A DNA stretch of 64,000 bases from Macrostomum lignano (lineage: Eukaryota). The stretch spans positions 1 to 64,000 of the forward strand of contig NIVC01000185.1 in NCBI GenBank assembly GCA_002269645.1, given 5' to 3'. Both the position numbers and the translations under genes were made by a program. The stretch's first letter is position 1. Each line of letters opens with the position of its first letter. The notes beneath the pieces were generated by a model that worked only from the letters and a program-made list of their open reading frames with translations, was not told the origin of the DNA and did not search any database. Of this stretch, positions 2,418-42,500 are shown piece by piece.

Positions 2418-2789
2418 CTCCGTTAGAGAAAAGATTTTCTTATTCACTCGAAACTTTTGCTTATTTTTACTTCATAATCATATTAATCGAAGCTCGAAGT
2501 GTCGAGCTTTTTTACGTCAGATATAATTTCCAGTTTTACTTGGAAGTAGATCTCCAAAACATTTTTCTTAAAATCTGGCACCTGCTGTTCTAGGGTTGCA
2601 TATATACGTGCTGCCAAGACCGGGAAACTTAAGCGTTTTTGTATATAGGATGCCAGATGAGACTACTCAATAATAACAGAAATTTTGGATTCCTGGAGTA
2701 GAAAGAACGGCTCTCTAGTGACTTTTCAGAAATTTAGCAGTACTGTAATCACTTCGTACCACTTTAGTCACCCTAGTAGCTCTGTAGTG

Positions 2790-3510
2790 ACTGCGGTACT
2801 GCTGTAGTGACTCTGGTAGCACTGTAGTGACTTCAATACCACTTAAGTGACTCTGGTACCACTTAAGTGACTCTGGTACCACTTAAGTGACTCTGGTACC
2901 ACTTAAGTGACTCTGGTACCACTTAAGTGACTCTGGTGCCACTTAAGTGACTCTGGTGCCACTTAAGTGACTCTGGTACCACTTAAGTGACTCTGGTACC
3001 ACTTTGATGACTCCGGTAGCACTGTAGTGACTTCAATACCACTTAAGTGACTCTGGTACCACTTAAGTGACTCTGGTACCACTTTGATGACTCCGGTAGC
3101 ACTGTAGTGACTTCAATACCACTTAAGTGACTCTGGTACCACTTAAGTGACTCTGGTACCACTTTGATGACTCCGGTAGCACTGTAGTGACTTCAATACC
3201 ACTTAAGTGACTCTGGTACCACTTAAGTGACTCTGGTACCACTTTGATGACTCCGGTAGCACTGTAGTGACTTCAATACCACTTAAGTGACTCTGGTACC
3301 ACTTAAGTGACTCTGGTACCACTTTGATGACTCCGGTAGCACTGTAGTGACTTCAATACCACTTAAGTGACTCTGGTACCACTTTGATGACTCCGGTAGC
3401 ACTGTAGTGACTTCAATACCACTTAAGTGACTCTGGTACCACTTAAGTGACTCTGGTACCACTTTGATGACTCTGGTACCACTTTGATGACTCCGGTAGC
3501 ACTGTAATTA
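2790..3510. repeat. Tandem repeat, 20-bp unit ACCACTTAAGTGACTCTGGT, with higher-order variant units
   Basis: Unit seen directly. It contains the palindromes CACTTAAGTG and GGTACC. The variants ACTTTGATGACTCCGGTAGC and ACTGTAGTGACTTCAATACC recur periodically. Confidence 0.95.
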
Positions 3511-8164: not shown

Positions 8165-8795
8165 TGAATATGAACTCACTCATCATCTCATGAACTCACT
8201 CATCATCTCATGAACTCACTCATCATCTCATGAACTCACTCATCATCTCATGAACTCACTCATCATCTCATGAACTCACTCATCATCTCATGAACTCACT
8301 CATCATCTCATGAACTCACTCATCATCTCATGAACTCACTCATCATCTCATGAACTCACTCATCATCTCATGAACTCACTCATCATCTCATGAACTCACT
8401 CATCATCTCATGAACTCACTCATCATCTCATGAACTCACTCATCATCTCATGAACTCACTCATGTATTCATGAACTCACTCATCATCTCATGAACTCACT
8501 CATCATCTCATGAACTCACTCATGTATTCATGAACTCAGGAACTCGAACTCAATAACTCATTAACTAATGAACCAATGAACTCATGAACCCAAAAACCCA
8601 GGATCAGGAACTTATGAACTCACTCATGAACTCACTCATGAACTCATGAACTCACTCATGAACTCACTCATGAACTCAATCATGAACTCATGAACTCACT
8701 CATGAACTCATGAACTCACTCATGAACTCATGAACTCACTCATGAACTCATGAACTCACTCATGAACTCATGAACTCATGAACTCATCATGAACT
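8165..8795. repeat. Tandem repeat, 20-bp unit CATGAACTCACTCATCATCT, decaying into shorter CATGAACT(CACT) units
   Basis: Seen directly. Confidence 0.95.
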
Positions 8796-9611
8796 CAGGG
8801 GGCAGGGGCCACGCGCCAGAGCCACAGCAGACAGCACCCAATACACAGTCGATGCCATTGTTGTAAAATAATCATCCAGGTCAGGTGCCACTTTTTGTCT
8901 GGGGATCTGCTTGATTATTTCAGCTCTCATATCTCACGACGAATGTCTTTTCTCTCACTCAATGCCGCTTCTCCACTCCTCTTGGTCTCGCCTCTTGGTC
9001 ACAAAATCATCCCAGGTGCACTTGGACTGGCAATGCATAAGAGACAAAGCAGGCAAATAAATGCGCTAGAGGGATGAAGTTAGTAACCCATTGACACGCT
9101 GGTGCAGGCACACTCTCGGTGAATTCTGACTCATTTACCTACAGTATGCACTCCGGCTGACCTGACATTTGACAGCTGCTGAATAAGGCTGGCCTGTGTG
9201 TGCGTGACTGCTACTCTCTCTCCTCACACAAATAAGTACTTGTACCTGAACCTCAATAGTGTATATTCTGAGCTAAAATAAAATGCGCAATATATGCTAC
9301 TCACAAGCAGTAGAAGTGCGACGGCATTTTCTGAAAACTTTCAGTAAAAAATTATATTTTTATAGTATTCCATAGAGTATAGTTTAATAGCTCTGCAATT
9401 ATATATTAGACTTGGACTCTTATATTCCTGTCGCGAACCCACCTGGTGATTAATTGGATGGAGGGAGGCTGGGGAGAGTTTCCTGGGAATAAATCTCGGT
9501 GCCTGGTCTGAGATCCGAGACTCAACCCTTGTGTATTTAGAACTAAAGCAAGTCACAGCTGGCCCGAGTCATGGGAGCCAGAATTAAGACTCAATTAAGA
9601 GTGCTAACGTT

Positions 9612-10197: not shown

Positions 10198-13100
10198 ATG
10201 AGTTTCACGGACCGCGTCATCAGCCTGTGCGAGACTGCGCCAGAGGGGCGCAACGAGGAGGAGATCGAGTTCTTGGCCAGGTGGATCGAATCCAGCAGCT
10301 CATATTTTCGGAAGCTGCGCAACAAAGGTACGCTGGTTCCTGAGTTCGGTGTTGTTGCTAGCCCATTGCGTTCAAGCGCTTGCTCTCGACCTATTAAAGT
10401 GAATCTCAATGAGACAGAAGTGAATCTCAATGAGACAGAAGTGAATCTCAATGAGACAGAAGTGAATCTCAGTGAGACAGAAGCGAATCTCAATGAGACA
10501 GAAGTGAATCTCAGTGAGACAGAAGTGAATCTCAGTGAGACAGAAGTGAATCTCAATGAGACAGAAGTGAATCTCAGTGAGACAGAAGCGAATCTCAATG
10601 AGACAGAAGTGAATCTCAGTGAGACAGAAGTGAATCTCAATGAGACAGAAGTGAATCTCAATGAGACAGAAGCGAATCTCAATGAGACAGAAGTGAATCT
10701 CAGTGAGACAGAAGTGAATCTCAATGAGACAGAAGTGAATCTCAATGAGACAGAAGTGAATCTCAATGAGACAGAAGTGAATCTCAATGAGACAGACGTG
10801 ATTCTCAATGAGACAGAAGTGAATCTCAGTGAGACAGAAGTGAATCTCAGTGAGACAGAAGTGAATCTCAATGAGACAGAAGTGAATCTCAGTGAGACAG
10901 AAGTGAATCTCAATGAGACAGAAGTGAATCTCAATGAGACAGAAGTGAATCTCAATGAGACAGAAGTGAATCTCAATGAGACAGAAGTGAATCTCAATGA
11001 GACAGAAGTGAATCTCAATGAGACAGAAGTGAATCTCAATGAGACAGAAGCGAATCTCAATGAGACAGAAGTGAATCTCAGTGAGACAGAAGTGAATCTC
11101 AATGAGACAGAAGTGAATCTCAATGAGACAGAAGTGAATCTCAATGAGACAGAAGTGAATCTCAATGAGACAGAAGTGAATCTCAATGCGACAGAAGTGA
11201 ATCTCAATGAGACAGAAGTGAATCTCAGTGAGACAGAAGTGAATCTCAATGAGACAGAAGTGAATCTCAATGAGACAGAAGTGATTGTCAATGAGACAGA
11301 AGTGAATCTCAATGAGACAGAAGTGAATCTCAGTTTGACAGAAGTGAATCTCAATGAGACAGAAGTGATTCTCAATGAGACAGAAGTGATTCTCAATGAG
11401 ACAGAAGTGAATCTCAATGAGACAGAAGTGAATCTCAATGAGACAGAAGTGAATCTCAATGAGACAGAAGTGAATCTCAATGAGACAGACGTGAATCTCA
11501 ATGAGACAGAAGTGAATCTCAATGAGACAGAAGTGAATCTCAATGAGACAGAAGTGAATCTCAATGAGACAGAAGTGAATCTTAATGAGACAGAAGTGAA
11601 TCTCAATGAGACAGAAGTGATTCTCAATGAGACAGAAGTGAATCTCAGTGAGACAGAAGTGATTCTCAATGAGACAGAAGTGAATCTCAGTGAGACAGAA
11701 GTGAATCTCAATGAGACAGAAGTGAATCTCAATGAGACAGAAGTGAATCTCAATGAGACAAAAGTTAATCTCAATGAGACAGACGTGAATCTCAATGAGA
11801 CAAAAGTGAATCTCAACGAGACAGAAGTGAATCTTAATGAGACAGAAGTGAATCTCAATGAGACAGAAGTGAATCTCAGTGAGACAGAAGTGAATCTTAA
11901 TGAGACAGAAGTGAATCTTAATGAGACAGAAGTGAATCTTAATGAGACAGAAGTGATTCTCAATGAGACAGAAGTGAATCTCAGTCAGACAGAAGCGAAT
12001 CTCAATGAGACAGAAGTGAATCTCAGTGAGACAGAAGTGAATCTCAGTCAGACAGAAGCGAATCTCAATGAGACAGAAGTGAATCTTAATGACAGAAGTG
12101 AATCTCAATGAGTTGGAAACTAATGTCAATGGGAGGGAAACTAATCTCAATGAGAGGGAAACTAATCTCACTGAGAGGAAACTAATCTCACTGAGAGGAA
12201 ACTAATTTCAGTGCAGGGGGAGCCCACTTGTGTTTCAAGAAGTCTGAGAGTTCATGTACCGACTGTGCAGGCATTGTAAAGAAAAGAAATCAGTGCGAAA
12301 AGTTTGCATTGTCGGTTGAAATCTATCGCCATGTAGAAAAAATACAGAGAGGCTTTGGTCATGTGCCGCAACTCAATGGCGAAAGTCGACAAGCAGCCAG
12401 CCAGGAGGCAAGCAGTCATTCCGAGTTTGCTGACCCTTTGAGCACGAACTCGGATATGTACGCAGGCACACGCTCACACAGGGTGGGTGTACGGCGGTCC
12501 TGCCTTTTTATGCGCACTTTCAGCTAGGCATGAGTGCCCGACGTGACAAACTCCAGCTATTGCGCATCTGAAAGCTGCGTACGGCTGTTCAGTCCAAGGA
12601 CTGGGGGGTCGCCACACACACTCCCAATTACCCCAGCTAATGCTGGCACCCATTTTACAGCTGGGTTGAACTGAAGCAATGCAGAGTTGAGTGTCTTGCT
12701 CAAGGACACAATTGTTCCGAGTGGGTCAAGAATCGAACCCCCGACCTTTCAGTCGCGAGTCCGACGCTCTGACCACTAGTCTGCAACCCCTTTTGAAAAG
12801 TAACTTCAAACAAAATCGACTGTAGCGTCCTACTTACTTCAGTTGTTTATGAATCGAACTCGGGGTCTCGAACTCAATTTCAACCTCAGATACTAGAATA
12901 TGACTCGATTGGCCACTCAGGCATAAATACCTAGCAAAACAGCTTTCTACTTTCAGTTCAGTAGCAATGAAGAATACCTAAGCTATTTTATAAGAATAAA
13001 GGCAGCTGAGATGACTTTGATAAGTTCAGAAGCCCAAGCTTGCAGACGTAAACAGCTTGCTGATTGGTTCAACCATAATGTACATGATAAGCCACTGAAA

Positions 13101-16100
13101 TGTACATGGCAGATTTAGGCTCGAACAACCGGGGAAAGTAATAAAAATTGGGTGGCGGGGCAGGGGTAGAGGTTCTGTTTGGAGTTTGAATGTTTAAAAT
13201 GGGGGGTATAGCCAATAACTCGTAAATACGCAGCCTGTAATCCTTGTCTTTAAAAATACATTAAAATGCTTCAGTTTAACTTGCTACTGAACTGAAAGTA
13301 GCTTACACGCAAATGTGTTGAGTGGCCCATCTAGTTATTCTAGCATTTGTGATTTCAACTCGTTAAAAAATCTTTCCAGACGCTATTCGAGAAATCGTTC
13401 GCGACTGCCACCTGCAGCGTTTCCATGCCAACGAGCTGATCATTCGGCAGGGCGAGAAGGGCCACAGTTTCTACCTGGTGATCACCGGACGCGTCTCCGT
13501 GTATGTCAACAGCGATGCCGAGCAGGCCTCGGAGCCTGTCACTGCTGCCGACGCCTCGGCTTCAGGCGCAGGGGGTCCCAACCAAGCAGATCGGGACCCA
13601 GAGGCGGATGCGGACGATGCCGACGAGGATGTGGACTTGGCCTTCCTCGATGATGCTAATAAATTAGCCAGTCACGGCGAGGACGCAGAAGAGTTGCGCA
13701 GCCGCTTGCTAGGCGCTCACGTGCTGCAGATGGGCGAGGGCTACGCATTCGGCGAGATCGCCCTCACCAGTCCTAACAGCATCCGTAAGGCGTCCGTCAT
13801 CTGCGATGAGGATGTCGCAGTGCTAGTAATTCACCAGGTGTCATTTACTAGAACTCTTAAAGCCTACCAGCTGCAGGAGTACCAGATGATCGAGAGCTTC
13901 ATAGACACCTGCCCCGTGTTCGTCAACTGGAGACCGAAGCAGCGGCAGAGCCTGCGCAACAGCCTGCACAAGGAGGTTTACGGATACGGCGAGCCGATTG
14001 TGCAGCAGGGCCAGAAGAGCGGAGGCCTGTTCTTTATTGTTGGGTGAGGAAGCGAGTCCATCCACTTAATAGCTATAATATTGTAACATATGATAATTTT
14101 AGCTCGTATGGCTGCGGGCACCTGGCGCAAAGCCTTCGGTGACATGACATCGTCCCATTTTCGAGGAGGGCGTTTCAAAATCTACAAAATTCACAAACCC
14201 GAATTACACCCGGCTTCACGTACGGTATACTCAAACTTTAAATACCCGGATATTAATTTTGAAGCATCTCCACTTAGGAACTGACAGCTGCGAGGCAGTT
14301 GAATTTCACAGAGTAATCATGCCAGGTTTAGGATGCAGAAGTGTGCTTCAATAAATGGACGTGAGAAACGTGAAGTTGTCACGTGTTTCCAATGCGTGCA
14401 TGGTTAGCAAGTGTATGTATATCCTCGTATCCCAAGCATTGCTGCTGCAAGACAATGCTTGCTCCGGTTGCTTCCACCACCTCAGCTGAAATTTCCCGGC
14501 TCCCAAAAACTGCCTCTACTGTTGCTGATACCTGGCTGCATGATCCCCAGTAAGGGGCGGGGGTGGTGGAGGCCGCACTGCTGACCACCCGACCATTCAG
14601 ACACTGCCATGGGTTTGGGGTGAGCCTCCCAGTGCATAGAGAAAGCCTGCTCCAGTTATTATAACATTTTTGGCCCAGACTCCCGGGACCTCTTCATCGA
14701 TCCAAGCAGGCTCAGAGGCAAGGGGTGAAAGAAAGCCAAGAGCGAGAGAGGGGAGAGAGGACAAATAGTAGACCTGTTGAATTTTTTCGTCTACGGGGGC
14801 CTTGATAGACAACCGGTAGTTGCCATGACAATAAGTCCAAATTCAGGTGCATAAGCTGCAACTTTGCCTTCAAGTCAAGTTCAAGTCTCGTTAAAATATG
14901 CTTCTATGTAGGGAAACAAACGTAAAAATAAAACTGAGAAATTTGCTTCTAGGAGCGAACCAGAATAAAGCAAAGTGCTTTCATTTCCCATCTGTCAAGA
15001 GGATCCGTGAAGCTGCTCGCCGATCCAATCAGGTGGCCGGCGAGCATCCAGAAGTCAGAGAAGGACGAACAGTCTTCAGCGGCGCCGGCAGCGACTCCGG
15101 CTCCGGCTGCAGCGGCCGTGCAGGCGGGACTGCTTCGACATCGTCAGGGCTACCAGGCTGCTGAGCAGAGGCAGCGCAGTCGTCAGGTCGAGATCGCCTT
15201 GCTAGGCGAGGGCGAGATTCTCGGGCAAGTGGAGCTGCTCGCAAGTTTAGGCGAGAGTCTCACAACTGCGATAAGCGTCGACAACACCTACGGCTACTGG
15301 CTGAATCGCGCCAATTGTCGCCGACTGCTGTCTCGCAACCGCGGCGCTCTGGCCCAGCTGCGCCAAACGATCCTGCTCCGTCTGCAGTCTCGTTCACGTC
15401 GGGCCCCTCTGATGCGTCGACTCGGCCAGGATCCTCGAATTGCGGGCGGTGCCGCGGCGGCAGCGGCAGTAGCCGCGGCTGCAGCCGCAGCAACCGCGGC
15501 TTCCACAGATCCCGTGGCAGCAGGCGAGGAGCAGCGCCAGCTGCAGCAGCAACAACGCCAGGCTTGGCTGATGCACACGCGCAAGCAGCCGCCGCCTGGC
15601 GACCTGCTCTGGCAGCACATGCTGGCCATGTACGTGGAGGGCCGCAGCCAGCTGGGTCCGGCTCCGGCCGATGCGTCGCTCTACTATCGCCACCTGTGCC
15701 GGGTGAATGCGGAGCGCAGGCGGCATCTTCGAGAGCGATCGAGGCCGGCTAAACTGGTCGCGTCGCTTCAGAACGAAGATGAGGAAGAGGCCAGGGAGTC
15801 TGAGCTGGACAGCGGGCAGCCGCAGTTGAAGATGTGGCAGCAGCAGCAGCAGCAGCGGCGGCGCACGGTCCCTAGGAGTCGCCGGCTGTTGCAACGCGAA
15901 CTGGAAGCATCCGAGAAAGGAATAGTCTCGGGTCTGGGTGAGCGGCCTGATTTTGGTTTCCGTTGAAAAATGGAGCTCTGAGTGGATAAAATATTTAGAT
16001 AAGATTCCTGGAAGGCTGACTGATCAACAGTTAGATGCTTTAAAAATCTTTTTCGACTGGCTTTCATCGCGTAACCCGGATGGAGCAAAGACGATACACT

Positions 16101-18404: not shown

Positions 18405-19316
<912 letters not shown>

Positions 19317-19909
19317 GGTGAAAAATTATGTGCTTATTCAGATAAATTTAATATTAACGTTAATCGATAGTTTACGTGATAAAGACATAAAAATATAGTA
19401 TTAATACTTTATTAATAAAAAGTTCTGTAAAAATTTGCTTTCATTTCTTAGGTAAAGTCACGTTAGGGACGGTAATAAAGTAAGTACCGAACTACGGTCT
19501 GTTAAAGTTGACGCGTGAGGCATTTCTTTTCTGTTTTATTAAGTATTGGTAGGTTCTTATAAACAATTAGTCTAGTTACCAGTTTAATGGTATTCGGAAA
19601 CTAGTACAAGTTTAAATACGTTATATAGCTCTAAAACCTCTCGATATCTTTGGTTGTTAGAGGATCGTTGAGTTTGCGTGACATATAGTTTCCGCAAGCA
19701 GTGTCCGTGTTTTTTTAGGGAAACTGTTTTGAGATAACACTTATTAGTTGAGGAGTTTTGAAATCGCGGAGCAAGAATAGTTTTTTAAATCATGTGACGA
19801 AAACTAACGGACGACAACGACATTGACACCGACATATTTTCAGGGTGTATAAAGAGAACTAAGATGGATATCATCTCTTTATCCTTACGACATAAGGGGG
19901 ACTGCGACG

Positions 19910-20980
19910 AGTATAAGGGACTTCATTGGGTATAAGGGACTTCGATGGGCATTATGGGACTTCGATGGGCATTATGGGACTTCGATGGGAATAAGGGGAC
20001 TTCGATGGGTATAAAGGGATTTCGATGGGTATAAGGTGACTGTGATGGGTATAATGGGACTTCGATGGGTATCATGGGACTTTGATGGGCATAATGGGAC
20101 TTCGATAGGTATAAAGGGACTTCGATGGGCATTATGGGACTTCGATGGGCATTATGGGACTTCGATAGGTATAGTGGGACTTCGATGGGCATTATGGGAC
20201 TTCGATGGGCATTATGGGATTTCGATGGGTATCATGGGACTTCGATGGGCATTATGGGATTTCCATGGTATCATGGGACTTCGATGGGCATTATGGGATT
20301 TCGATGGGTATCATGGGACTTCGATGGGTATAATGAGACTTCGATGGGAACAATGGGGTTTCGATGGGTATAATGGGACTTCGATGGGTATAATGGGGCA
20401 TCGATAGGTATAATGGGACTTCGATGGGTATAAAGGGACTTCGATGGGTATAATGGGACTTCGATGGGTATAATGGGGCATCGATAGGTATAATGGGACT
20501 TCGATAGGTATAATGGGACTTCGATGGGTATAAAGGGACTTCGATGGGTATAATGGGACTTCGATGGGTATAATGGGGCATCGATAGGTATAATGGGACT
20601 TCGATAGGTATAATGGGACTTCGATGGGTATAAAGGGACTTCGATGGGTATAATGGGACTTCGATGGGTATAATGGGACTTCGATGGGTATAATGGACTT
20701 CGATGGGTATAATGGGACTTCGATGGGTATAATGGGACTTCGATGGGTATAATGGACTTCGATGGGTATAAAGGGACTTCGATGGGTATAAAGGGACTTC
20801 GATGGGTATAATGGGACTTCGATGGGTATAATGGGACTTCGATGGGTATAAAGGGACATCGATGGGTATAATGGGACTTCGATGGGTATAATGGGACTTC
20901 GATGGGTATAATGGGACTTCGATGGGTATAATGGGACTTCGATGGGTATAATGGGACTTCGATGGGTATAATGGGACTTG
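19910..20980. repeat. Tandem repeat, 20-bp unit GGGTATAATGGGACTTCGAT, inside the mirror block (complement reading CCCATATTACCCTGAAGCTA)
   Basis: Seen directly. Confidence 0.95.
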
Positions 20981-22032
20981 TTAAAGCGTAGCTCCATAAT
21001 CTTGAAATTCGAATCTATTCAAAGACGATTCAACTATAGGCTAGGGTCTGGTCTCCTAAGTCTCGTACGTACCGGACTCGAACGTTAGCATGTCAATTTT
21101 GTCCATTGATTCCGAAGAGAGCGGGAAGTTCAACTCGTCCCCCCACCGACTGACCGGTATCGTTGCCTGCACGGGCTGTCCGAAACTGAGTTGTTTCGTT
21201 GTTTGTTACGGGCAACGGCTCAGGAGTCGTCGGGCCGGTCGGTGGGGTAGCGAGAGGAGGAGGTTCACAACGGTTTTACTCGGCTTATTCGTCAAACTCA
21301 GGGAAATTCATGGTGGGGGACGAGACGCGACTGTGACCGTCAGCGAGGCGTAAGAGCATAAAAGATTAGTTTATAAGTCGGACGACCTTCAAGATTATTA
21401 ACTTACAGACTCAACGTCGCAGGCCGTCGCCTGTTTGGGAAGGATGAGTGGAATGCGACACAAAAAATTAAACGTCGGTACGACGAGAGGTCGAAGGGCA
21501 CAGCGAAGTACTGCTTCCTCCTTCTCTATCCCGTCTTTTAAAACCTTCCTTTATCTCCTCCAGGACGTCCGACTGCCTCCGTCTTCTTGTTACTTGTCCA
21601 ACGAATCACTCTCCCCACCGACAGGCCAGAGGGCGCCGGAAGTTTTGAGGTAGCGGGGGGGAAAACGCTGCACGTCGTTGGCGTCTCAACCGACCGGACG
21701 TCGTCGAGGCGGACAGCGAGGGTATCTCAGGACCCTCGAGGGAGGAGTTTCTGTTCCCCTGCGACCCTGCTACCCCTCTCAAAAAGGGGAAATTGGGGGA
21801 GGGCGGTACGGGCAGAGAGACGACGTACCCCTTCCTTTCGTTAAACGGACTCGTCTCACCTTAAGAGCCGAACCCCTTGCCACCGAACGACCACCCTGCG
21901 CCCCAACCGGATAAAGTTCAGCCACATCCGTCGGCGAGGGGTCAATTCAGTGCCTCTACACTCGTCTTTGGGCATCACTAAGCTATCGGGGAGAGCGAGT
22001 GCGAACAAAGAGTTAAGCCGTTAGCTCTTCCG

Positions 22033-22971
22033 TACCGCCTGTTCTTTTGACTGCGACGTTTCTTCTGGTTTCTTCTCCTGTCGTTCTTTTATCTCGGCGG
22101 CGGCGGTCACGTTTTTCTCCTTCTACTTCTTCTGCTGCTCCTGCTTCTCCTGCTTCTTCTTCTTCTTCTCGTCTTTTGCCTGCGATTCTTCGGGCGACGA
22201 CTGGTCCTACGACTACTCCTGCTACTCCTACTCCTTCTGCTGCTTCTACTTCTTCTCTTTGGCCGGCGACGGTGGCGGCGATTTTTCCTCCTTCTGCTTC
22301 TACTTCTTCTTCTACTTCTTCTACTCCTCCTACTTCGACTCGGTCGGTTCGGTCGCCGTCGCCGTCGACTACTGCTCCTACTCCTACTCCTACTCCTACT
22401 TCTACTACTTCTCCTTCTTCTCTTTCGACTCGGCCGGTTCGGTCGCCGTCGACTCCTACTACTACTTCTACTCCTACTTCTTCTACTTCTGCTTCTGCTT
22501 CTTCTCGGCCGATTCGGTCGTCGTCGTCGCCGACTCCTACTCCTGCTCCTACTTCTGCTTCTGCTTCTGCTTCTTCTTCTTCTTGTTCGCAGGCCCCACG
22601 GTCGTTTTCAGCTGCTCCTTCTACTTCTGCTTCTTCTTCTGCTCCTACTTCTTCTTCTTCTTCTTCTTCTCCTTCTTCTCTTCTTTCGCCTTCTCCTACC
22701 TCTGCTTCTACTCCTGCTTCTTCTTCTCCTTCTGCTACCGTACCTGTGTGACCTGTTTTACCGCCGCCTGTACTTCTTCACCGATCGCCTCAGGCCTCAC
22801 CTCGACCTGCGTCTCCTTTGCCTCCCGTACAACCGGCCTAGGTACCTGCAACTTTTCAAGTACCTTCCGTACAGCCTGCTTCTGTTTCGCAAGCATTTGG
22901 TCCTCTAGCTCCTATACTTCAGCTACAGCAACGTCGTCTAGTACCTGGCCGAACACAGACCCCGCCGCACT
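22033..22971. other. Hidden ORF readable only as the complement in left-to-right order: 312-aa highly acidic protein
   Basis: The complement of 22033-22035 (tac) is ATG. It translates without a stop as MADKKTDAAKKTKEEDSKKIEPPPPVQKEEDEEDDE...AEPAKPAAAA(D/E)n...GMDTLDKMAADMKKWLAESGVELDAEETEGMLAGSMDVEKFMEGMSDEDKAFVNQEIEDMKSMSLQQIMDRLVSGAA, with TGA at 22969-22971, followed by T-rich UTR-like sequence. Confidence 0.88.
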
Positions 22972-24359
22972 TGCGCCGATGACTCCAGACTTGCTACAAC
23001 CAGAAAGTCGGGCTGACCTCACATCGATATGTACACAAAAATATCCCTTACGTTTCGATTAAAATCCATCTACTTTACATCCAAATCAACCCTTTGCTTA
23101 ACAGCAAATAATCTACCCACAGTTCAAAACTAATTTAAACTAAAACAATTTTCCAGACAAACAGTCTAAACATAAAATCGCTGCGCAAAGTTGATTATGA
23201 AAATGCTCCTTATAAAAGAAAATTATGCTTCAATACATCTTCTAAATTGGACGAAAACAACCCCCCTTCCATAAACGTATTATCAAGCATATTCTATATA
23301 TCTGTTTGCTAAAGGGCCGTAATTGAGCGACAATATAACTTATATTGGCTTATTTTAGGGACTTACCTTGATTATGGGACCTTTAGTGTTGTGTCATGAG
23401 CATTCTAGGGTTCCAAACCGAGTCTGTCTTAAATCATCAATTCAGGTTTTATTTATTCGTCTTGACAGAGCGTGAGATAAAAGAACTAGGGCATAAAAGA
23501 TCTACTTCTTTTGTTACATGACAACTTAGCTTTGAAGCTACAGCTTTAAAAGAGTACAGCCATATCGCATAGAAATACGGAATATTCGAGGAGACTTGGA
23601 CTGTGACGACTTCCTGAGTTCACGCACAACTTTTGTAGAAAAAAACAAACATAGACACGTACATGATGCACGTGATTTAATAAGCGTGCGCGTGCGTAAA
23701 ATTGTTATCTACACTCACATTTTAAGTCTAAGTAATAAATTATATCGTTTTAAACATACTTAAAGACTAGTTACTTTGTTAACAACTGCTACAAAAAATA
23801 CGGAAATCAAAAAAAATAATTTGGCTAATAATATGCTCGCATGTGTGCACGTTTCCATACGAACGTGAACATGTGATCATAGAGCCTTTTAGCATAAACG
23901 GCAACTCTTTTCACGTACGTACCCGTTCCTTAAAAGCCACAAAGTAATTTTCACGTTAATCGTTAAAAATCTCGCCGGGAACAGTCTGTCTAATCTGATC
24001 TGATCTGACAGATCTCAGGGTACTGGTAAACGTTAATATATATTAAGAATGTACAAATTTTTGTCCTAAAAAAATAAAATAATCTCCGTCCCCCAACACA
24101 CGTGGGACCGCGTGAAATTCGCTGTAACCGTGCGTTGGCCGCTCTCCGTAATGACGGGTAAGGCGGCTGAGGGGACTCGTCCGTATGTTCGCGCGCCTAT
24201 GCATGCGTCCGTGTGTGAGTGTGTCCTCACATGTCGCCGCGATTGAAATATAATAACAATCCGTACATGTGAAGTGACGCGGAACCCCCAACCGGGAGTT
24301 CCGGCAATTAACGTGCTCGTCTCGGTTCGGCTCTAAGGTTAAGTCGGGGTTTAATTACA

Positions 24360-24430
24360 CTGACGTGAACCTTAGCTCGGACCCAGCGACCGTGTGGTCT
24401 CGTCGACGCGATGGCGACCCGATGCCGGGG
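24360..24430. mobile_element. tRNA-derived (Ala-like) SINE head in mirror orientation
   Basis: Reading 24430 to 24370 backwards without complementing gives GGGGCCGTAGCCCAGCGGTAGCGCAGCTGCTCTGGTGTGCCAGCGACCCAGGCTCGATTCC. The A box TAGCCCAGCGG fits TRGCNNAGYGG. The B box GGCTCGATTCC has one mismatch to GGTTCGANNCC. Confidence 0.65.
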
Positions 24431-25824
24431 TTGTCCTAAAACTAACAAAATTAAGAATATTATGATATGGAAGATTAACGCGAGATAAACCACTTTAGGC
24501 ACAACTTAAACCACGCTTAAGCGGTCGTCCGACTGCACAGTCGGTCAATCTCAAACCGCTATCTGAATCGTCTTTCGTCTTTCGTACGTTAAACCTTTAT
24601 CGACGCAAGTCAAACCAGACGGGTTCTTGTCGAGCATGTACATGTTCTCTTTAACTCTGTACCGTGAATAGCACTACTCTCTCCAGTCTCGTCGTAGTGC
24701 CGTCGCTTCATAGACGTCACCCACTAGGTGTGTGTCTACATGCAAGTCGCGACGGATTTAGACCTGCTTTAAGTGAAAATTATGTACATGTACGTCCACA
24801 TTGTTTAGTATAATTGTAACTATGACTGTGGCTAAATGACACGAAGCTGACAAAACAAATTACACCAAAAGTACAAACTCTCGCAAATACTGTCACGTAA
24901 CGAGCACCACTTTCATATACCTTTCGAAACTAAAAGGCAGAAAACTCAAATCGGGTACGTTTATCTTGCGCGTCAAATATGGTTTAACCAACGACCAAAA
25001 GACGTATACAGATACCGTTTAGTTAAAGAACTACCGAAGCCTGAAAAGTTCGGACATCGAAGCCTGGAGTCTTGAGTCTTTACTTAGAGATTCTCGAGAC
25101 CGGAGAGCGAGGACAGTCTACCAGTCAGGGCTCCACCGATCTAAAACCCGCTCGTCGTTCCAGGATATCGATTCTCTTCTGTCGCTCTCTGTTCGACCCT
25201 CTTAAACTTTCCATCTTCTTTAATCGATTGGCCGTCCGATTGAATTGGGCGACGGTGGTCAGGCACGCGGGGCCGAGTGGTTTGGCCTCGAAAGCTTTAG
25301 CCTGAAAGCTGATCTTCCCGTGACGTGAATGGACGGTAGATATCACTCACAGAAAATCGACAGATAGAGCTTCAGTATCGGCTTATCTTCCCTGTGACGA
25401 CCCTGATTTCAAGCGTAACCGGTACGAGGGACTGAGAGAGGACTTCTGCAGGGGGTTCTTGTGGTGGCGAGCTTTCAAGCACCGCCCAATGTACTACCTC
25501 ATTACCAAATTCCCAGAAGTACATGTACAAGTACACGTAACTGCACGCTTTTGGCACTAAATGTGTTAACACGTCGACAGATAGCGATAATGTAGGTGTA
25601 TTGTCACCTTTGGAGATCTTTAGACTAACATTTAACTCGTTTTAGCCGCTTAGCTGCCTGAGACTGCACGAAGGCACCAGTCTGGCCCTTATAGTTTGCA
25701 TGTTTATCATGATTGCTTAGATCGACTGGTTGACTGGGACCTGTGTCGCTTCCGGTCCACTGTGACCTCTGCCCCTAGATCTAGTCGCTCATCTCAGTTG
25801 GCATTGCGAAAAAGAAAGAAAACG

Positions 25825-26794
25825 TTAAGTATTTAACTTGTTGTTAAACGGGGATGGGAAGCTGGGCTTACCGCGGATCAGCCCTAAAGGGGGCTCTGCC
25901 GCTGCGGGGCACTTTCCAAGGGCACGGGGAATTCCGTGAACCCGAGATACCCTCCTCGGAAGTCCGAGGACCAATTTAGTTGGGCCCTGACTAAGGCCAG
26001 GGGAGGCGAGGGACTTCAAACCTATGGTACAAGGCACCGCCAACCCAAAAAGTGGAATCAGGGACGGTGCTAGGACCGAGTCCACCCAGGCTACCCCCAG
26101 CAGACAAGTCCTCGGGAGTGCGCTTCAGAAATAGAATTAAAAATCGAAAAGTTTTGGATATGCTACTTAAAGCGGTCCGAGAGCGGGGATACCCCGAAGT
26201 CAACGGAAATGGCTTATCAATTGGAGTGAGTCTGGAAGGCTTGTTTCCGAGTGGGAGACTCCAGGCGGGAAGACCGACCGCCTCTATTGCTACCAACCCA
26301 AGGGTATCGCAAAGGGATAAAACCGCGCTGGGATGCCAGCCCAGAAAAAAAGAAAGGCAGAAGGGAGGAGCACCTGAACCCTACAAGCAGGCGGGAGAGA
26401 GACCTGCAACCCGGGGCTCAGCCTCAGGGCTGGCATCAACTGGGCTCTACCGTACACTTTTGTGAATGGTCGTCTGTCTTTGCTGCAGGGCGGGTGCGAC
26501 CGGGGGCTCAAGTCCCGTTCTAGCCACACTGCAGTCCAGATCTCCAACTCAATCCAGGTACACCACCCCTAACCCAGGGCCGATGGCCAAATAATTGGAA
26601 TGTACGAAAAAAAGAATTGGGTTATTTTTAGAACAGGCACAGCCCCTCCGGGGCGAACCCTTAGTTAATTGGGCTAGCCGAAGCCAGGCCAATCGGATTG
26701 CGCACAACCCTTAGACAAGCTACCAGAGAGGCAGCCAGGGTAAAAACAGTCGGAGACCGTCTTTATTATTAATAAATTATTAAGTATTTAACTT
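25825..26794. mobile_element. ~940-bp GC-rich insertion flanked by a 15-bp direct repeat (possible target-site duplication), inside the mirror block
   Basis: TTAAGTATTTAACTT is identical at 25825-25839 and 26780-26794. In the complement reading the insert ends in an AAT-rich tail (GAAATAATAATTATTT) and carries AATAAA. Confidence 0.4.
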
Positions 26795-27146
26795 ACAGGT
26801 TAAACTTTCTAACTTAATTCACAATTCTAAACGCCTTAGATTGAGTCGGTGCGAATTGCTACTTTTAGTATTATACGGAACTTCTGCCTTGAGTTTGGCA
26901 CACAAAAACAAGTAAGCAAAAGTGCAAATCCTATCAGACTACCTAGGAAGGGGTCAGACAAGGGGCGCACCCAGTTAAGCAGGTCAAGAAAGTCTCTCAC
27001 CCTACCAATCAGAGGACCTAACCGCCGGTAGCCAAGGATTAAACAGAGACCGAAACGCTCGGGCGGGATGCTGCTGCTGATTTTAGTTGATGAGCGCCGC
27101 AGTTGTTCTCCACTGGCCGGTTGCTGTCGCTACTACTACTACTGCT

Positions 27147-27412
<266 letters not shown>

Positions 27413-28604
27413 ATAGTTTGGCTCAGGCAAATAGCTTGCTGTTTGGCCAGTATAAGCCAATGTTTAATAATAATTAAAAAATGAAGGGACTTTTTTGATG
27501 TGTAAGTATATGCATGTGTTACGATCGTTTTGTAAAAAATGTAAAAAAAATTTTTGAAAGAGTGCCAAACTTTTTTCTACGAATTATTCGAACTGTATAT
27601 CCTTTTAATAAGTTTCGAAATCCGAACTATCTTTGTGTATTTGTATCTTTGATTAGTTCGAGCGACCAGAGATCCCAACTTATGACTCGAAAAATATCAA
27701 AATCGTCATGCAATTGAAGTTATAACAGCCGCAGACTAATAATTAATGCGGCGATCGTATATTGATCCATAGTAGTTCAGACCGATAAGATGTGCTTGAC
27801 ACGAGGAGAATCGTATATTAAGCGTATATTAGTAGTGATAGCAACTCAACGCAGCAGTTATAGCTCTTAGAATTCCTGGTTTTTGCTACCGTACGTTTTG
27901 CATGGTGTTTCTAATAGACTCCGGGGTGTGCGGGAGAAGTGTCTATATTCATTGAACACCGTCATATCTGGAGAGAGCGTAGTATTACATTTATATTTAT
28001 GTACATGCACAATCAATTTTTAAGAATGCATATATCCGCGGCTGATACTTTAATCAATTTAGTCAATCTATTTTTTCTAGGATCCACGCCTAAGAGAAAA
28101 CAATATGCAATAAAAATGAAATGAAGTTCTCTTTGTTGCGCTTTTTTTATGGTCTGAAATGGTAAACTTACACATGCTGTTAAAATTAAGCTAAAATTCA
28201 AATTCAGACCGGACGCCAGAATCGTAATCTAAATATACTAAATCTTCCATATACTAAAAATGATGTTTGTTTGTACCAAATCGATTATTTGCTTGCTATA
28301 GTTTTGCTGTAGCTCCGCTGTATATGCAACAAACAAGCCTTATATATTATAGATGCATTGAAGCTTTTTTAGGGTTTTTTAGTAAGGAATAGATATTTTG
28401 TAAAGGACAATAAGATATTATACTGCCTTCGCTATTTAATTTTTATTTTGTCCCCTTATTCACTCAATATCATTAGGGCCTGGCCTACCCATCCCAGTTA
28501 GTCTATAGGGCGATCTTCCAGTTTGTTTCACGATATTATTCGCTTGTTTATTTTAGTTTGAAATTGTGCGTCAATGTAGTGAAACATCTGAAGACGATAC
28601 CTAC

Positions 28605-28821: not shown

Positions 28822-30850
28822 ATAGAGATTATTTTCTGACGTGTCATTACGTTGCAGCACCAATTCAAACTTGAGAATAGACTCATAGACAGAGTACTCT
28901 ACTGAGTCTACTCTAGGCTTGCATGCAATGTGGTACCACTGGTATGGAGCTATTTCTACTGACACTTAGGGCCTAGTATCAGTATGTATAACAAATTGCA
29001 TGTTGCTACATAGCATACAAGATTGTGCAGCTCATAAAACATAACCAAATTGAAAATTCACTAAACCAAATGAACACTTTTGTTAATGAAAACAAGTTTC
29101 TGTTTTTTTAATAAAAGTAATATTTTTTATGTTTGAGCAAATTTATATCAATGTTTATAATGTAATAAACAAACAAATACTAGACCTAACAAGTATTTTT
29201 TTAATATATTAATCTTTTGACAAAGTTTTTTAAGTTTGTCAATCTTAACAAAACCATAGTTTGGATTGTGTATTAGTGTACACCAGGTCTAATAGGGGAA
29301 ATATGGGACTATATTTGTATGGTGAGACTAAAAAATATTTTTATTATATATACTATGTTGTACACTTTTTCATTTTTTAATTCATTATTCATGCAAATAA
29401 CAAACTTAAAATTATATACTTTTGAAATATGCACTGAGAAGAAATAATTAAAAAAATACTTGTAATACTTTTAATTTTCTAAAAATAAGAAAAAACATTT
29501 TTAGGGCATAAAGTTTAAATTTGTTTTATTATTATTCATAATTGTTCCATGTTGATGACATTGTATATAGCATATTTTATATAAAGTTGCTTCATATATA
29601 CATAAGTAATCCTAATATATGCAGTTATGTCATTATAATTATGTCATTATGTCATTATAATATGCATTATAAAATAACTACAAACTGATATTATAAAATG
29701 CTTCTTGTTTCAAATGATTATATTTACCTAATCTTTAATTTTTTTCACCAAAGGAATAGTGTGTCTATTGCAAAAGCAATTTGTTACCAAAACAACTGGC
29801 ATGCAACTGCAAAAAGGTCCTTTATTATTGCAATGCCTCTAGGCCATACATATAAAGTTGACTACTGCCTACACACCATGGACAACTTCTGTAGCAGTTA
29901 AAAGGTGTTCTGCATGGCTGGCATATCCACGAGACCATGGTATCTAGAATACCTAGAAGATAAAATAGATTTTATTTTAAATATTTTCAATAATTTCAAT
30001 ATTCTTAAGCAATTAAGGCAGAGAAGAATATCTGCTTAGTATTTTTATAAAGAGGCTTATAGAAAGGAACCAATCAGATACAATGTTTATTTTCCTTGCT
30101 AGTAGCTCATGTATTTAGGTTTATCATTTATAGTTTTTTGCATCAATCTAAATCTCCTAAAGTATACAAAAACATGTCTGAATTATTTTTGTCTTTTATT
30201 TCTAAAAAGCTTTCTTTCTAAATGCATTTTTGTAGGATATTAATTAATATATATATTGTTATTCTAATTTGTTACTAAAGTGGCTGTTACCAAAAATGGT
30301 TATCATTTTTTACCAAAGGGACTATTATTAAATTGGACTGTTTTTGTCATTTTCTAATCTTTTTTCCTTTATATAGTCTCCTAAGTTTTGCTATCTTGCT
30401 GTGGCTATATCTATCAAAAATAATCTTGTTTTTTAATTATTGTTGTTTTTATGCTTTTGAACTTTGATTAGACATTTAATAATAATATATTAGAGCATTT
30501 CAAGAAGATAAGTTTTGCAATAAGGCTTAAATTGTCAAAATGTTTAGATATTGCTTTGCATTCTTAGTAAATCGTAGTAATATCTTAGTAAAACAAAATT
30601 ATATAGTTTTGAGACTGCCTAGATAGAAATTTATTGCTTAAGACACTATTATGTAGAAGTTGTATGAAATGAATGAGCTTCATTATATGAATTATATGAA
30701 TTAGACTACAAGAAAATGTAGATATGGCTACAGATATAGATATGGGAAAATTTTGCTATTAATTTCAAGTTAATTATGCATGTATTAATCTTTCATATTC
30801 GATGCCATAAAATTTTGTCATACATTTCACTGGCTGCTGGCTCCACCAAA

Positions 30851-33165
30851 GCGCCAAGCAAAGCAGACAGCTCAGAACAGACTGGGCATTTCAGCAGCCA
30901 ATGGCGGCATTTCCAAGCCTGCTTCGTCGCCTCTAGCAGCAAAGGCTGATGTGCAAAACCGGCGACCACCATCAAGGCGACAGGCTGCGGTTCAGGCAAT
31001 TGCTGCGTTGCCTGGATTGGCTAGCCAGGACCGCAGAAGGCAGTCTGCTCCGCCTGTTGCCAAGTTCTCTGCTACCAAGGATGCTGCGACCAAGGGTGCT
31101 GCTACCAAGGATGCTGCCACCAAGAGTTCTGCTACCAAAGTTGATGCCACCAAGAGTTCTGTTACCAAGGATGCTGCCACCAAGAGTTCTGCTACCAAAG
31201 ATGCTGCCACCAAGAGTTCTGCCACCAAAGTTGATGCCACCAAGAGTTCTGTTACCAAGGATGCTGCCACCAAGAGTTCTGCTACCAAAGATGCTGCCAC
31301 CAAGAGTTCTGCCACCAAAGTTGATGGAGTTAAAAAGGCAGCACAGGTGTCGAACAAGGCTTCAGGTGAGTGACGTGCCATAATACACATTGGGAAGAGG
31401 TGCCTAACCTACACGGGGCGGGTAGTTGCTCAGCCTACAGTAGGGAGTGGGTAGGTGGCCAGCCTACAGTAGGGGGTGGGTAGGTGCCCAGCCTACAGTA
31501 GGGGTGGGTAGGTGCCCAGCCTACAGTAGGGGGTGGGTAGGTGCCCAGCCTACAGTAGGGGGTGGGTAGGTGCCCAGCCTACAGTAGGGGGTGGGTAGGT
31601 GCCCAGCCTACAGTAGGGGTGGGTAGGTGCCCAGCCTACAGTAGGGGTGGGTAGGTGCCCAGCCTACAGTAGGGAGTGGGTAGGTGGCCAGCCTACAGTA
31701 GGGAGTGGGTAGGTGGTCAGCCTACAGTAGGGAGTGGGTAGGTGCCCAGCCTACAGTAGGGGGTGGGTAGGTGCCCAGCCTACAGTAGGGAGTGGGTAGG
31801 TGCCCAGCCTACAGTAGGGAGTGGGTAGGTGGTCAGCCTACAGTAGGGAGTGTGTAGGTGGTCAGCCTACAGTAGGGAGTGGGTAGGTGCCCAGCCTACA
31901 GTAGGGGGTGGGTAGGTGCCCAGCCTACAGTAGGGAGTGGGTAGGTGGCCAGCCTACATTAGGGAGTGGGTAGGTGGCCAGCCTACAGTAGGGGGTGGGT
32001 AGGTGGCCAGCCTACAGTAGGGAGTGGGTAGGTGGTCAGCCTACAGTAGGGGGTGGGTAGGTGGCCAGCCTACAGTAGGGAGTGGGTAGGTGGCCAGCCT
32101 ACAGTAGGGGGTGGGTAGGTGGCCAGCCTACAGTAGGGGGTGGGTAGGTGCCCAGCCTACAGTAGGGAGTGGGTAGGTGCCCAGCCTACAGTAGGGAGTG
32201 GGTAGGTGCCCAGCCTACAGTAGGGAGTGGGTAGGTGGCCAGCCTACAGTAGGGAGTGGGTAGGTGCCCAGCCTACAGTAGGGAGTGGGTAGGTGGCCAG
32301 CCTACAGTAGGGAGTGGGTAGGTGGTCAGCCTACAGTAGGGGGTGGGTAGGTGCCCAGCCTACAGTAGGGGGTGGGTAGGTGGCCAGCCTACAGTAGGGG
32401 GTGGGTAGGTGGCCAGCCTACAGTAGGGGGTGGGTAGGTGCCCAGCCTACAGTAGGGAGTGTGTAGGTGGCCAGCCTACAGTAGGGAGTGTGTAGGTGCC
32501 CAGCCTACAGTAGGGGGTGGGTAGGTGGCCAGCCTACAGTAGGGGGTGGGTAGGTGCCCAGCCTACAGTACAGAGGGGGGTAGCGGCCCAGCCTGCAGAG
32601 CCTGACCTTCCTCCGTCTGATTTCTCAATATTCCACAGGCGCCAAGCGGCAGCCGAGGAAGCCAGAAGCGGAAAAGAAGCAGAGCAAAATGGCGCCAAAG
32701 CAGAAAAGAAGCGGCGCCGGCGGCGGCAGCAGGAAGTCGGCAGCGCCCCGAGACCCATTCGACATCAGCGGCCTGGATGTCGATGTCGACGAGGACGATA
32801 GTGTCGCGACCAGCGTTCGACCGAAGTCGAAAGGTCCCAAATCTTCAACAACGCCAGCTCCAGCGCCAGCATCGGCGCCAGCGACTAGCGCTGTCGGGCA
32901 TTCCCAGCGCCAACTGCTGCTGTGCCACAGGCACGCCTATCAGTTTTTTACACCGGGGCGCCGGCGCCAACAGAGCGGCGCTGGCAGACAGTTGGTCAAG
33001 TCGGCTAAGGAGAACCAATCCGCCGCGTCTGGCGCCAGCGGTAGCGGCGCCGATTCTGACGTAGACAGCGCCGAAGAGGAGGAGACCGCGCCGGCGTCGC
33101 CGCGTTTTGACCGACAACGACAGTCGGCGTCGGCAACTGCACCCGCGACGGATGCGTGGCGTTAG
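30851..33165 (+). CDS. Partial gene for a low-complexity basic/acidic protein with about 17 xxxTK pentapeptide repeats; exons ~30851-31365 and 32639-33165
   Basis: The frame is open from 30789. The donor TCAG|GTGAGT at 31366 (phase 1) joins the acceptor TTCCACAG| at 32638 in frame: ...NKASG-AKRQPRKPEAEKKQSKMAPKQKRSG...DPFDISGLDVDVDEDD. The 5' end is unresolved. Confidence 0.6.
31430..32570. repeat. Intronic G-rich tandem repeat, ~29-bp unit GGGTAGGTGCCCAGCCTACAGTAGGGGGT
   Basis: Seen directly. It fills almost the whole 31366-32638 intron. Confidence 0.96.
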
Positions 33166-39523: not shown

Positions 39524-42500
39524 TCAAAGCCGGGTCTCTTGGCCGCCAGCCGGAAATCCGTCGGGCAACGGCAGTGCTGAGTACTGGCTGCGCCGCCGCC
39601 TGTCGGCCCGGCCGCCGCCGACTCCGCACAGGCAGCAAATGCACAGCGACATCACTATTGTGAGCAGCTGCGGGCGCGGTCATTGGGGGGCGGGAAATCT
39701 GTCAGTACTTAAATTGTTACACTTTATTATACGCTATTAGATGTAGCAAAATCCTGATTTTTAAAAGCTTTTAAAGCAATCCAAATTAAAAGGGTGAATG
39801 TATGATAACAGTTGATTTCTGTCGCCTCAAAGACAGGGCTCAAAGACCCCCGTGCAAACTAAATCATGTAAACTAACTAAACCTTAAATATTCGTACTTT
39901 AGGGCAAAAGTCGTTTTATTAGCCCTCTTACACCTCCCCCAGCTGAACCCTCCGACCGCTTCTTGCCGCACAAAACCTCTACCCTGCCCGCCTCCATTTA
40001 ATTGCCTTTCTCGGTGTTCTATATCTAAAGCTGCTATGTACATTAAAAAGACTCATTTATTGGCCCTCTTAACTCCCCCCGGTTGAATTCCCCGACCGCG
40101 TCTTGCCGCACGAAACCTCTACCCCCCCGCTCGCCTCCATTTAATTGCCTTTCTCGGTGTTCTATATCTAAAGCTACTATGTACATTAAAAAGATTCATT
40201 TATTGACCCTCTTAACTCCCCCCGGTTGACTTCCCCGACCGCGTCTTGCCGCACGAAACGTCTACCCCCCCCCGCCCGCCTCCATTTAATTGCCTTTCTC
40301 GGTGTTCTATATCTAAAGCTGCTATGTACATTAAAAAGACTCATTTATTGGCCCTCTTAACTCCCCCCGGTTGACTTCCCCGACCGCGTCTTGCCGCACG
40401 AAACGTCTACCCCCCCGCCGCCCGCCTCCATTTAATTGCCTTTCTCGGTGTTTCAGCCAAATGCTGACTGCCATGTACATTATCAGTGGCGCTGGCAAAT
40501 GTACATTATGCCTTATAAGTCACTCTCAACTACCTTTCGTGTCGTGAAATAGCTTACGCATGCTTCCTTACTACTGAACTGAAAGTAGAAAAACTGTCAA
40601 GAAAACTGATAAAAAATCCACAGCCACAATTATTATGGTTCTGAGAACTGGCAGAGACTATTCAAATATGCTTTGCCAATTAGCCTACTTATTATATAGT
40701 AGCGTGAAATGTTGCTCATTATGTGATACCAGTTCTAATTAAAGTCGTCCCTGGATATGGCTAGTAATATTATAAATTAATTACAATCTGCCCTATTTGG
40801 GCCAGATGTGCAACCGACAGCTCAGCCGCAGCTATTGCGCGGCGCATCTGAAGGCTGCGTACGGCTGTTCAGTCCAAGGACTGGGGGGGGGGGTCGCCAC
40901 ACCCTCAATTACCCCCCATCTAATGCTGGCACCCATTTTACAGCTGGGTGAACTGAAGCAATGCAGAGTTAGGCGTCTTGCTCAAGGACACAAATTGTTC
41001 CGAGTGGGTCACGAATCAAACCCTCGACCTCGTCGTGAGTCTGACGCTCTAAGTCAAACCACTAGGCTACAACCCGCCCTTACTTGGCTATCAAACACAA
41101 CGCTAAAACATTTTACATTACTAATGTAAAAGTACTAGGATAAGTTAAGGATAAGTAAGGATAAGTAGATAAGAATCTACTAGGATAAGTAGAATAATCG
41201 GAAAACTAGCGAATTAATTCACCTCTAGCGCTGTCAGGCCAACAGAAACGAATAGGCCGATGCGGATCGCGCGCCAGGTAGTTTCCATGACAACGGAACG
41301 GCAGCCCTGGAATAAAGCGATTGAGGATAGCCATGTCGCATCTGAGCTTATATACTATTTAAGCTCGCGTCTACAACCCCATTTGAAGTTTAGCAATTGC
41401 CACTGGTTTTGGATAAAAAATCTACTATTAGCAACAAGTGGCGATTCACACCATGAGGGCCAACCCCCAAGGCACAGAGTGTACATGGCCTTACGATTAG
41501 AAAGTCAGGGGGCTGCTGTAAACCCTGTGGGAGCGAGTGCGCGCCTGCGTACAGCATTGGCGCGCTTGTGTGCCCAGGAGTCAGATGAGGAATAGGCAGA
41601 ATCAGCGCCAGTTGTGGGACAATGTCATCTACAGCACCTTAAGCTAATGCTCACCCTATCATAGGCCAGCTCAAACGGCAGCGAGTACGGCTTGGGCTCG
41701 CACTCTGTAGGGCCCAGCTTCTCTGAGTTGCAGCAGGACCAAGGAATCTGCAGGGTATCGCCGCCTGCGGCCCCTCTGTAGTCCCTGTAGGACTGACCGC
41801 CGCAGCAGTAAAACTGAAAAATAAGAGATTTTCTTGATTGTCAAACTTTTGACCCCGTGTGCAGAAATCAGAATAAGAAACAAGAAATAACAGAACCAAC
41901 CCGCTTGTGAAGGATGTCCATTAGGCCAGCATTGCCATCATTACTATACTGATAGTTGCGCTGCCAGGTATCGAAGGACTCGCCAATCGTCTCTTTAACC
42001 TGAATTTGTATTTTTAGTATGATAGAAATAAGCTACTTACACTGTTCAGTAGTATTTTCTGTGTGTTAAATTAAATAAAAACATTTGTCCAGAAAAAATA
42101 TGACCCGTAGAAGGGAGTTTTCTAACGTCAGATACTAGCATCCCCTTTGACCCTTGGCATCTCAGCAACTTCACCCGTGAGCATTGGCATCAGCAACTTC
42201 ACCCGTGAGCATTGGCATCGCAGTAACTCCAGCCGTGAGCCTTGGCATCAGCAACTTCACCCGTGAGCCTTGGCATCTCAGCAACTCCAGCCGTGAGCAT
42301 TGGCATCTCAGCAACTCCACCTGTGAGCATTGGCATCTCAGCAACTCCACCCGTGAGCCTTGGCATCTCAGCAACTCCACCTGTGAGCCTTGGCATCTCA
42401 GCAACTCCAGCCGTGAGCATTGGCATCTCAGCAACTCCACCTGTGAGCATTGGCATCTCAGCAACTCCAGCCGTGAGCATTGGCATCTCAGCAACTCCAC

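Follow-up and report, generated by a model that had tools for sequence, protein, structure and literature searches.

A 6-kb block in a Macrostomum lignano contig reads as host genomic DNA only after complement without reversal

In natural DNA, symmetry of the kind "same strand, reversed order" is discussed only for mirror repeats and H-DNA, which are short, usually homopurine-homopyrimidine, and consist of two adjacent arms. Template-directed synthesis yields antiparallel complements, and to our knowledge no polymerase, recombinase or transposase reverses polarity without complementing. Here we analyzed the first 64,000 nucleotides of Macrostomum lignano contig NIVC01000185.1 (GenBank assembly GCA_002269645.1), hereafter the window, in which a block at 19317-25440 resembles host DNA only when it is reversed without complementing or complemented without reversing. 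The two operations are equivalent, as they give the same duplex, and their product is called the mirror reading below, as opposed to the native reading of the deposited letters. Unlike a natural mirror repeat, the block is 6 kb of complex sequence, and no partner arm was found in the window.

Long segments of this kind are known from deliberate use, and a search of the literature for mirrored segments in assemblies found no report of one; the matches covered deliberate uses only. According to one such source, reversed and non-complemented decoys provide a null model for the false-discovery calibration of hidden Markov models of repeats, after Wheeler et al. 2012 (10.64898/2026.04.14.718546). 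The transformation is identical to that in our block, keeping base composition, homopolymers and reversal-symmetric repeats while destroying genes, motifs and homology. Decoys are, however, kept as separate files, whereas the block is embedded seamlessly between normal flanks of the same locus. SynHPRT1R, the synthetic "backwards" locus of Camellato et al. 2024, is described in a paper that cites it (10.1101/2025.02.04.636130) as an extended stretch that carries genes and is reversed without complement, within a normal chromosome, which is the arrangement seen here. By the same paper it was chemically synthesized and purposely integrated in engineered mouse cells, whereas nothing in our locus suggests engineering. 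Finally, a mis-oriented contig or a true inversion shares with the block a contiguous kilobase-scale extent, an orientation unlike that of the flanks, and one edge at a long microsatellite. Reverse complementation, however, keeps strand-symmetrized k-mer statistics, open reading frames (ORFs) and homology, whereas in the block these were restored only by the mirror operation.

A preliminary description had delimited the block at 19320-27060, as a complement without reversal, in part from tetranucleotides judged by eye. The switch that it reported proved real. Within 19320-27060, ACGT/TCGA/GTAC occurred 38/78/40 times and TGCA/AGCT/CATG 16/19/23 times, both flanks showed the opposite preference, and the CG/GC ratio was 1.34 inside versus 0.63-0.73 in the flanks. 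Much of the TCGA excess, however, came from a 20-bp minisatellite inside the block (19898-20979, 54 units found by Tandem Repeats Finder (TRF), unit GGGACTTCGATGGGTATAAT as written), the unit of which contains TCGA and CG; it supplied most of the 78 TCGA counts and inflated the counts made by eye. The analysis was therefore redone with tandem arrays masked in all tests.

With the arrays masked, strand-symmetrized Karlin odds ratios were exchanged between block and flanks for each dinucleotide and its reversed counterpart. For CG and GC, the block had 1.25 and 0.85 and the flanks 0.86-0.89 and 1.29-1.41; for TA and AT, 0.92 and 0.71 stood against 0.72-0.85 and 0.89-0.92; and for CA/TG and AC/GT, 0.76 and 1.06 against 1.07-1.10 and 0.81-0.83. 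The AG/GA pair was swapped only partially. The ratios that reversal leaves invariant were unaltered, with AA/TT at 1.18 in the block versus 1.17-1.21 in the flanks and CC/GG at 0.93 versus 0.93-0.96. This pattern is the prediction for reversed host DNA and not that for a foreign signature.

Orientation was scored with strand-symmetrized k-mer models, trained leave-one-out on the window outside the region under study, by assigning to each 1-kb window the log of P(k-mer)/P(reversed k-mer). Since strand-symmetrized counts are invariant under reverse complementation, a real inversion cannot alter this log-likelihood ratio (LLR); reversal without complement, or its equivalent, is the one operation of the two that can. 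As the products of template-directed synthesis are antiparallel complements, true inversions keep strand-symmetric k-mer statistics as they were and cannot give the signal seen here, and an inversion was excluded by the design of the test. At k = 3-6, every scored 1-kb window outside the block was positive, or about zero in the case of the largely repetitive window 33001. The windows starting at 19001-25001 were negative with the exception of 22501, an acidic low-complexity stretch, in which the LLR was about +10 at k = 3-5 and was rated near zero. The cumulative Markov likelihood ratio dropped by 178, 193 and 221 bits (order 2, 3 and 4) from the left edge to ~25430. An inverted or mis-oriented contig is thus not what was observed: the strand-symmetrized LLR was strongly negative, and the native strands had no repeat or domain matches.

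Sub-regions of the block, scored with the arrays masked, gave -28, -62, -3 (the acidic low-complexity part), -17, -61 and -18 bits. Normal windows of 800 bp (n=26) ranged from +16 to +65 bits, and those of 650 bp (n=104, leave-one-out) had a mean of +28.1, a standard deviation of 10.6 and a minimum of +6.5, with none at or below zero. In the window, mirrored and normal 650-bp windows had non-overlapping scores in this test. These values bear on the explanation that chance or repeat-driven bias produced the tetranucleotide counts, which would then be due solely to the 20-bp minisatellite and a TC-rich low-complexity stretch. The large share of the minisatellite in the TCGA counts speaks for it, as do single repeat units outside the block, for example at 2756-3517, which also show mirror-like ratios. 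Against it, five of the masked sub-regions stayed clearly negative and 0 of the 104 normal windows scored at or below zero. Single units of the (GACA)n, 20-bp and (TAG)n arrays carried less than 1 bit of orientation signal or none (-0.34 bits for the 20-bp unit, which is uninformative). The masked analyses already refute this explanation, and we give it practically no weight.

The mirror operation was also compared with all other letter manipulations. Combining the 24 base permutations with the two directions gives 48 transforms, which were ranked by the likelihood that the host model assigns to the transformed segment. In 19317-25440 the top two of the 48 were reverse-only and complement-only, at +190.1 and +189.0 bits above identity, respectively, and the next transform reached +105. 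In control segments, identity and reverse complement came first and all others were at least 70 bits worse. Among leave-one-out 1.5-kb windows outside the block, identity or reverse complement held ranks 1-2 in all but two, in which the ranks were 3-4 with margins of at most 1.5 bits. Between 20251 and 25500, by contrast with these windows, identity ranked 6-32 of 48.

Evidence of a different type came from a BLAST comparison in which the complement-only window was the query against the native window. Apart from the reversal-symmetric (GACA)n arrays, all matches fell in the block. The mirror form of 24122-24313 matched the minus strand at 41441-41626 with 72% identity over 203 nt (E = 7e-20), the plus strand at 12451-12511 with 80% identity, and the minus strand at 61619-61681 in a 30-nt core with 28/30 identical positions; the copy in the block and the three native copies were compared in one alignment. 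The native block, searched on both strands against the rest of the window, had no match better than E = 0.002, and that match sits at 26762-26830, beyond the mirrored part. All three native loci adjoin a dispersed-repeat family that is seen in the normal self-comparison of the window. Given E = 7e-20 in mirror form versus 0.002 in native form, the block, as judged from the alignments, carries a diverged copy of a host repeat which is recognizable solely after complement without reversal. The family itself (12451-13024, 40512-41626 and 61619-61681) has rearranged copies, since 12554-12789 resembles 40829-41075 (83%) and 12944-13024 resembles 40591-40512.

The repeat and the preceding tests also address the explanation that the block is foreign or compositionally distinct DNA, acquired by horizontal transfer or derived from a virus, a contaminant or a young transposon, which stands in normal orientation and has a signature resembling that of reversed host DNA. 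Genomic islands can indeed have differing dinucleotide signatures, and the block as written shows no CpG depletion. Foreign DNA would not, however, match the host odds ratios pair for pair after an XY-to-YX swap with AA/TT and CC/GG held constant, would not put the mirror operation first among 48 transforms with a lead of 85 bits, and would not hold a host dispersed repeat in mirror form only. In addition, the native reading had no Pfam family among 10 native ORFs and no Rfam family in the native window, and the similarity of the native block to vectors and plasmids was confined to a low-complexity stretch. A foreign origin is therefore very unlikely in our judgment. Four independent internal tests, namely the odds-ratio swap, the Markov likelihood ratio, the ranking of 48 transforms and the mirror-only repeat, strongly support the conclusion that 19317 to ~25440 consists of ordinary DNA from the genome of the same organism, written as complement without reversal.

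The left edge of the block adjoins a (GACA)n microsatellite of ~229 units (18405-19316, 912 bp, detected by TRF), and the mirror signal begins at once at 19317. To the start near 19320 in the preliminary description one correction applies: a border cannot be placed within the array, which is reversal-symmetric, each unit having an LLR of exactly 0. Because the array reads the same when reversed, the left border may lie anywhere at ~18.2-19.32 kb (18.2-19.35 kb as the breakpoint interval of the Markov test), and the mirrored piece could equally include or exclude the array. If the piece was complemented in place, the array would lie outside and the block would start at or after 19317, since no (CTGT)n is present. 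The left border showed no symmetry other than the self-symmetry of (GACA)n.

At the right border, the cumulative LLR reached its minimum at 25428-25442, the last mirror-type tetranucleotides occurred at 25574, and a run of the normal type restarted at 25652. CG equalled or outnumbered GC until ~25600, after which GC was the more frequent. We therefore place the end of the mirrored part at about 25.4-25.65 kb and bracket it more widely by 25.2-26.3 kb. The dinucleotide ratios such as CG/GC do switch, as the preliminary description had expected for its borders, but on the right near 25.6 kb and not at 27.06 kb, so that its end at 27060 was about 1.5 kb too far. The sequence at 26301-27151 is normally oriented and outside the block (+31.8 bits, identity minus mirror), a score that for 26300-27150 lies within the range of normal 800-bp windows, and sliding windows from 26251 on ranked identity or reverse complement first or second. 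A (TAG)n array at 27152-27417 (~89 units), which when mirrored would read (ATC)n or poly-His, poly-Ile or poly-Ser, has normal sequence on both sides; it probably drew the earlier delimitation so far to the right.

Between the two lies a transition zone (25441-26300), which contains the right border and in which composition is undecided on orientation. The 200-bp windows over 25201-26300 all scored near zero. The score of 25651-26300 was +8.5, a value within the bottom 1% for normal windows that no mirrored window attained. The zone fitted the host model no better than shuffles did (z = 1.1-1.9 versus 5.4-6.8 in controls), and it was itself not shuffle-like but had normal internal structure. 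Given this poor fit and the normal internal structure, 25.2-26.3 kb probably represents an element of distinct composition. A second manipulation of 25.2-26.8 kb, by another letter permutation or by shuffling, was rejected because no transform was convincingly better and the differences reflected base composition. The somewhat longer segment 25200-26760, which in neither orientation matched the host k-mer model better than shuffled sequence did, is rich in GGG/CCC runs, with CC/GG odds of 1.20 versus 0.93-0.96, and blurs the right border of the block; it may represent a separate transposable element or an insert resembling a short interspersed nuclear element.

Coding content was examined in both readings. 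The number and length of open frames did not discriminate between them, as frames of at least 70 aa numbered 25 in each, and the TC-rich stretch at 22.0-23.0 kb was open in several native frames too, including one of 345 aa. The preliminary statement that the normal strands give no convincing genes consequently does not hold. Its full ORF in the left-to-right complement, on the other hand, is present: 22033-22971, open in this form only when the plus strand is complemented and read from left to right, encodes an acidic product of 312 aa (MADKKTDAAKK...QQIMDRLVSGAA) with runs of E/D, PAKPAAA-like spacers and a unique C-terminus of 77 aa. It has a Kozak-like start, and its stop codon TGA is the complement of ACT at 22969-22971. 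Codon usage, scored in 12 frames after training on flank genes with Pfam support, ranked this frame (22033-22968) first of the 12, with +243 for the whole ORF versus +81 for the best native frame, +34 versus +12 for the unique C-terminus and +29 versus +21 for the N-terminus. The other mirror ORFs looked random, and none of the 10 among 15 that were searched matched Pfam.

A candidate hidden gene at 22033-22971 is accordingly plausible as a single, unproven ORF predicted from codon usage. The broader suggestion that real genes are hidden in the block would hold for this one acidic ORF at most, for which no homologue was found. The splice signals described earlier do exist as strings. The complement of 21462-21476 is the acceptor-like TTTTTTAATTTGCAG, and the donor-like AAGGTGAGT and CAGGTAAGT are contained in reversed 21441-21456 and 25318-25340, respectively; the acceptor and the donors are on opposite mirror strands. 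Their frequency was at chance level, however. Over 43 kb of normal flank, AGGTRAGT occurred 3 times in the native versus 4 times in the mirror reading, and GTRAGT 32 versus 41 times. Being equally common in both readings of normal flanks, such motifs are uninformative on orientation, and the counting of splice and poly(A) motifs, non-discriminating even there, was dropped as a test.

Host composition, k-mer signature, repeat family and codon usage are thus present in the mirror reading only, and we consider it very probable that an informatic mirror operation of some kind, and not a biological feature, produced the block. One contiguous piece of the genome would have passed through half of a reverse-complement operation in software. 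The piece would measure ~6.1 kb; inclusion of the (GACA)n array and of the neutral zone would bring it to as much as ~7.9 kb. The step responsible may have been the orienting of a contig in assembly or scaffolding, an edit by hand, a conversion between formats, or the deliberate insertion of a reversed decoy. A left edge at or inside a long microsatellite would fit the end of a contig, and a mirrored contig ending in (GACA)n could still overlap a normal contig, as the repeat is reversal-symmetric. The physical DNA would then be the un-mirrored sequence, and nothing biological would have taken place here.

Several observations weigh against this account. The segment at 25.2-26.3 kb fits neither orientation. 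The right border has no repeat, gap or run of N that would mark a contig end, and a check there for a mirror-symmetric junction, inverted repeat, overlap or landmark gave nothing above control level; an unmarked border is less tidy than a mis-oriented contig would predict, and would be compatible with an edit made later or with a planted decoy. The mirror ORF gives no outside proof that the mirror reading is true: it had no Pfam family, no homologue in a word search of 5.8 billion proteins with the 77-aa C-terminus, and no related locus in a metagenome search, although these negatives say little because controls from the normal flanks (a cyclic-nucleotide-binding (cNMP-binding) exon and a flank ORF) also matched nothing. 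No close relative of the species seems to be present in the protein and metagenome collections searched. Lastly, the origin of the block as an artefact is inferred and was not itself observed.

A decoy that was planted or leaked, for instance as a benchmark spike-in, would be one variety of such an artefact, set apart only by intent and by the stage at which it arose. Work on repeat models routinely uses reversed non-complemented genome segments to control for false positives (10.64898/2026.04.14.718546). The right border coincides with no natural landmark of assembly, and the block is one clean contiguous piece made by a single transform. The left border is harder to reconcile with a decoy. 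It lies at the end of or inside a 912-bp reversal-symmetric microsatellite, a site that random placement would hit in only ~1-2% of cases, whereas contigs commonly end at such arrays. We regard a decoy as possible but doubtful.

It could also be proposed that the block is present in the chromosome as written, through some unknown polarity-reversing or non-templated process or as undisclosed synthetic "backwards" DNA. Such DNA would be chemically ordinary, given that loci of ~100 kb, reversed and not complemented, were synthesized and integrated in mouse cells as controls (10.1101/2025.02.04.636130). The real-world examples are all deliberate syntheses, however, no enzyme mechanism is known, and the window looks wild-type and invertebrate-like, with no engineering landmarks. 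A physical origin has next to no probability in our view, and the account by a mirror operation in software is retained below.

As biology the block has no importance, as it is almost certainly an error. As a matter of data quality, neither BLAST nor gene finders nor repeat maskers recognize a mirrored segment, and its content is lost from annotation. Six-frame and homology tools detect nothing in the block; hidden here would be at least one plausible gene, for the acidic 312-aa protein, and one copy of a transposon-like repeat. If the error arose in assembly, further contigs of the same assembly may be mirrored, as one script bug rarely acts once. The strand-symmetric likelihood test for reversal needs the sequence alone, so that a cheap screen for such errors is possible. 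The block shows that mirror errors are detectable from the letters themselves, and it deserves a data-quality flag.

The flanks of the block are ordinary animal genomic DNA in normal reading. At 495-2417 they encode a KIF3A-type kinesin (Pfam Kinesin, E = 3e-116) with 62-66% identity to annelid, mollusc and vertebrate KIF3A, for which no near-identical entry was found. The kinesin-like region as a whole (340-2417) is intronless, yet it changes frame. Frame +1 (346-477) matches residues 4-47 of annelid KIF3A, and frame +3 takes over at 498 for residue 48 and beyond, with ~20 nt (478-497) in between that neither part explains. The change might stem from an indel in the assembly, from a very small unconventional intron, or from an origin of the region as a processed pseudogene or retrocopy. 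The cNMP-binding exon used as a control lies at 13367-14044. A decayed element of mariner/Mos1 type occupies 58373-59562, with HTH_48 in 58373-58906 and Transposase_1/DDE_3 in 58852-59562. As these domains sit in two overlapping frames, the copy is frameshifted and, by its reading frames, probably dead. An intronless ORF at 62665-63285 encodes a Rho-family GTPase with a poly-Q/H N-terminus; its C-terminus passes into non-homologous sequence and no obvious CAAX box was found there, and the ORF may be a retrocopy or may have a downstream exon.

Mini- and microsatellites make up ~14 kb, or ~22% of the window, as the sum of TRF intervals. Minisatellites with units of 20-30 bp are unusually dense, with more than 20 arrays in the window, for example at 2756-3517, 8170-8797, 10397-12112, 31420-32598, 51464-53103 and 57491-58194. 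Several of them fall within long open frames; one example is the 21-bp array at 10397-12112, which adjoins the cNMP-binding gene. Two regions of the window, 29000-31000 and 42000-44000, are AT-rich (GC 28-35%) and show extreme CpG depletion, with CG/GC of 0.03-0.2, far stronger than in the rest of the window.

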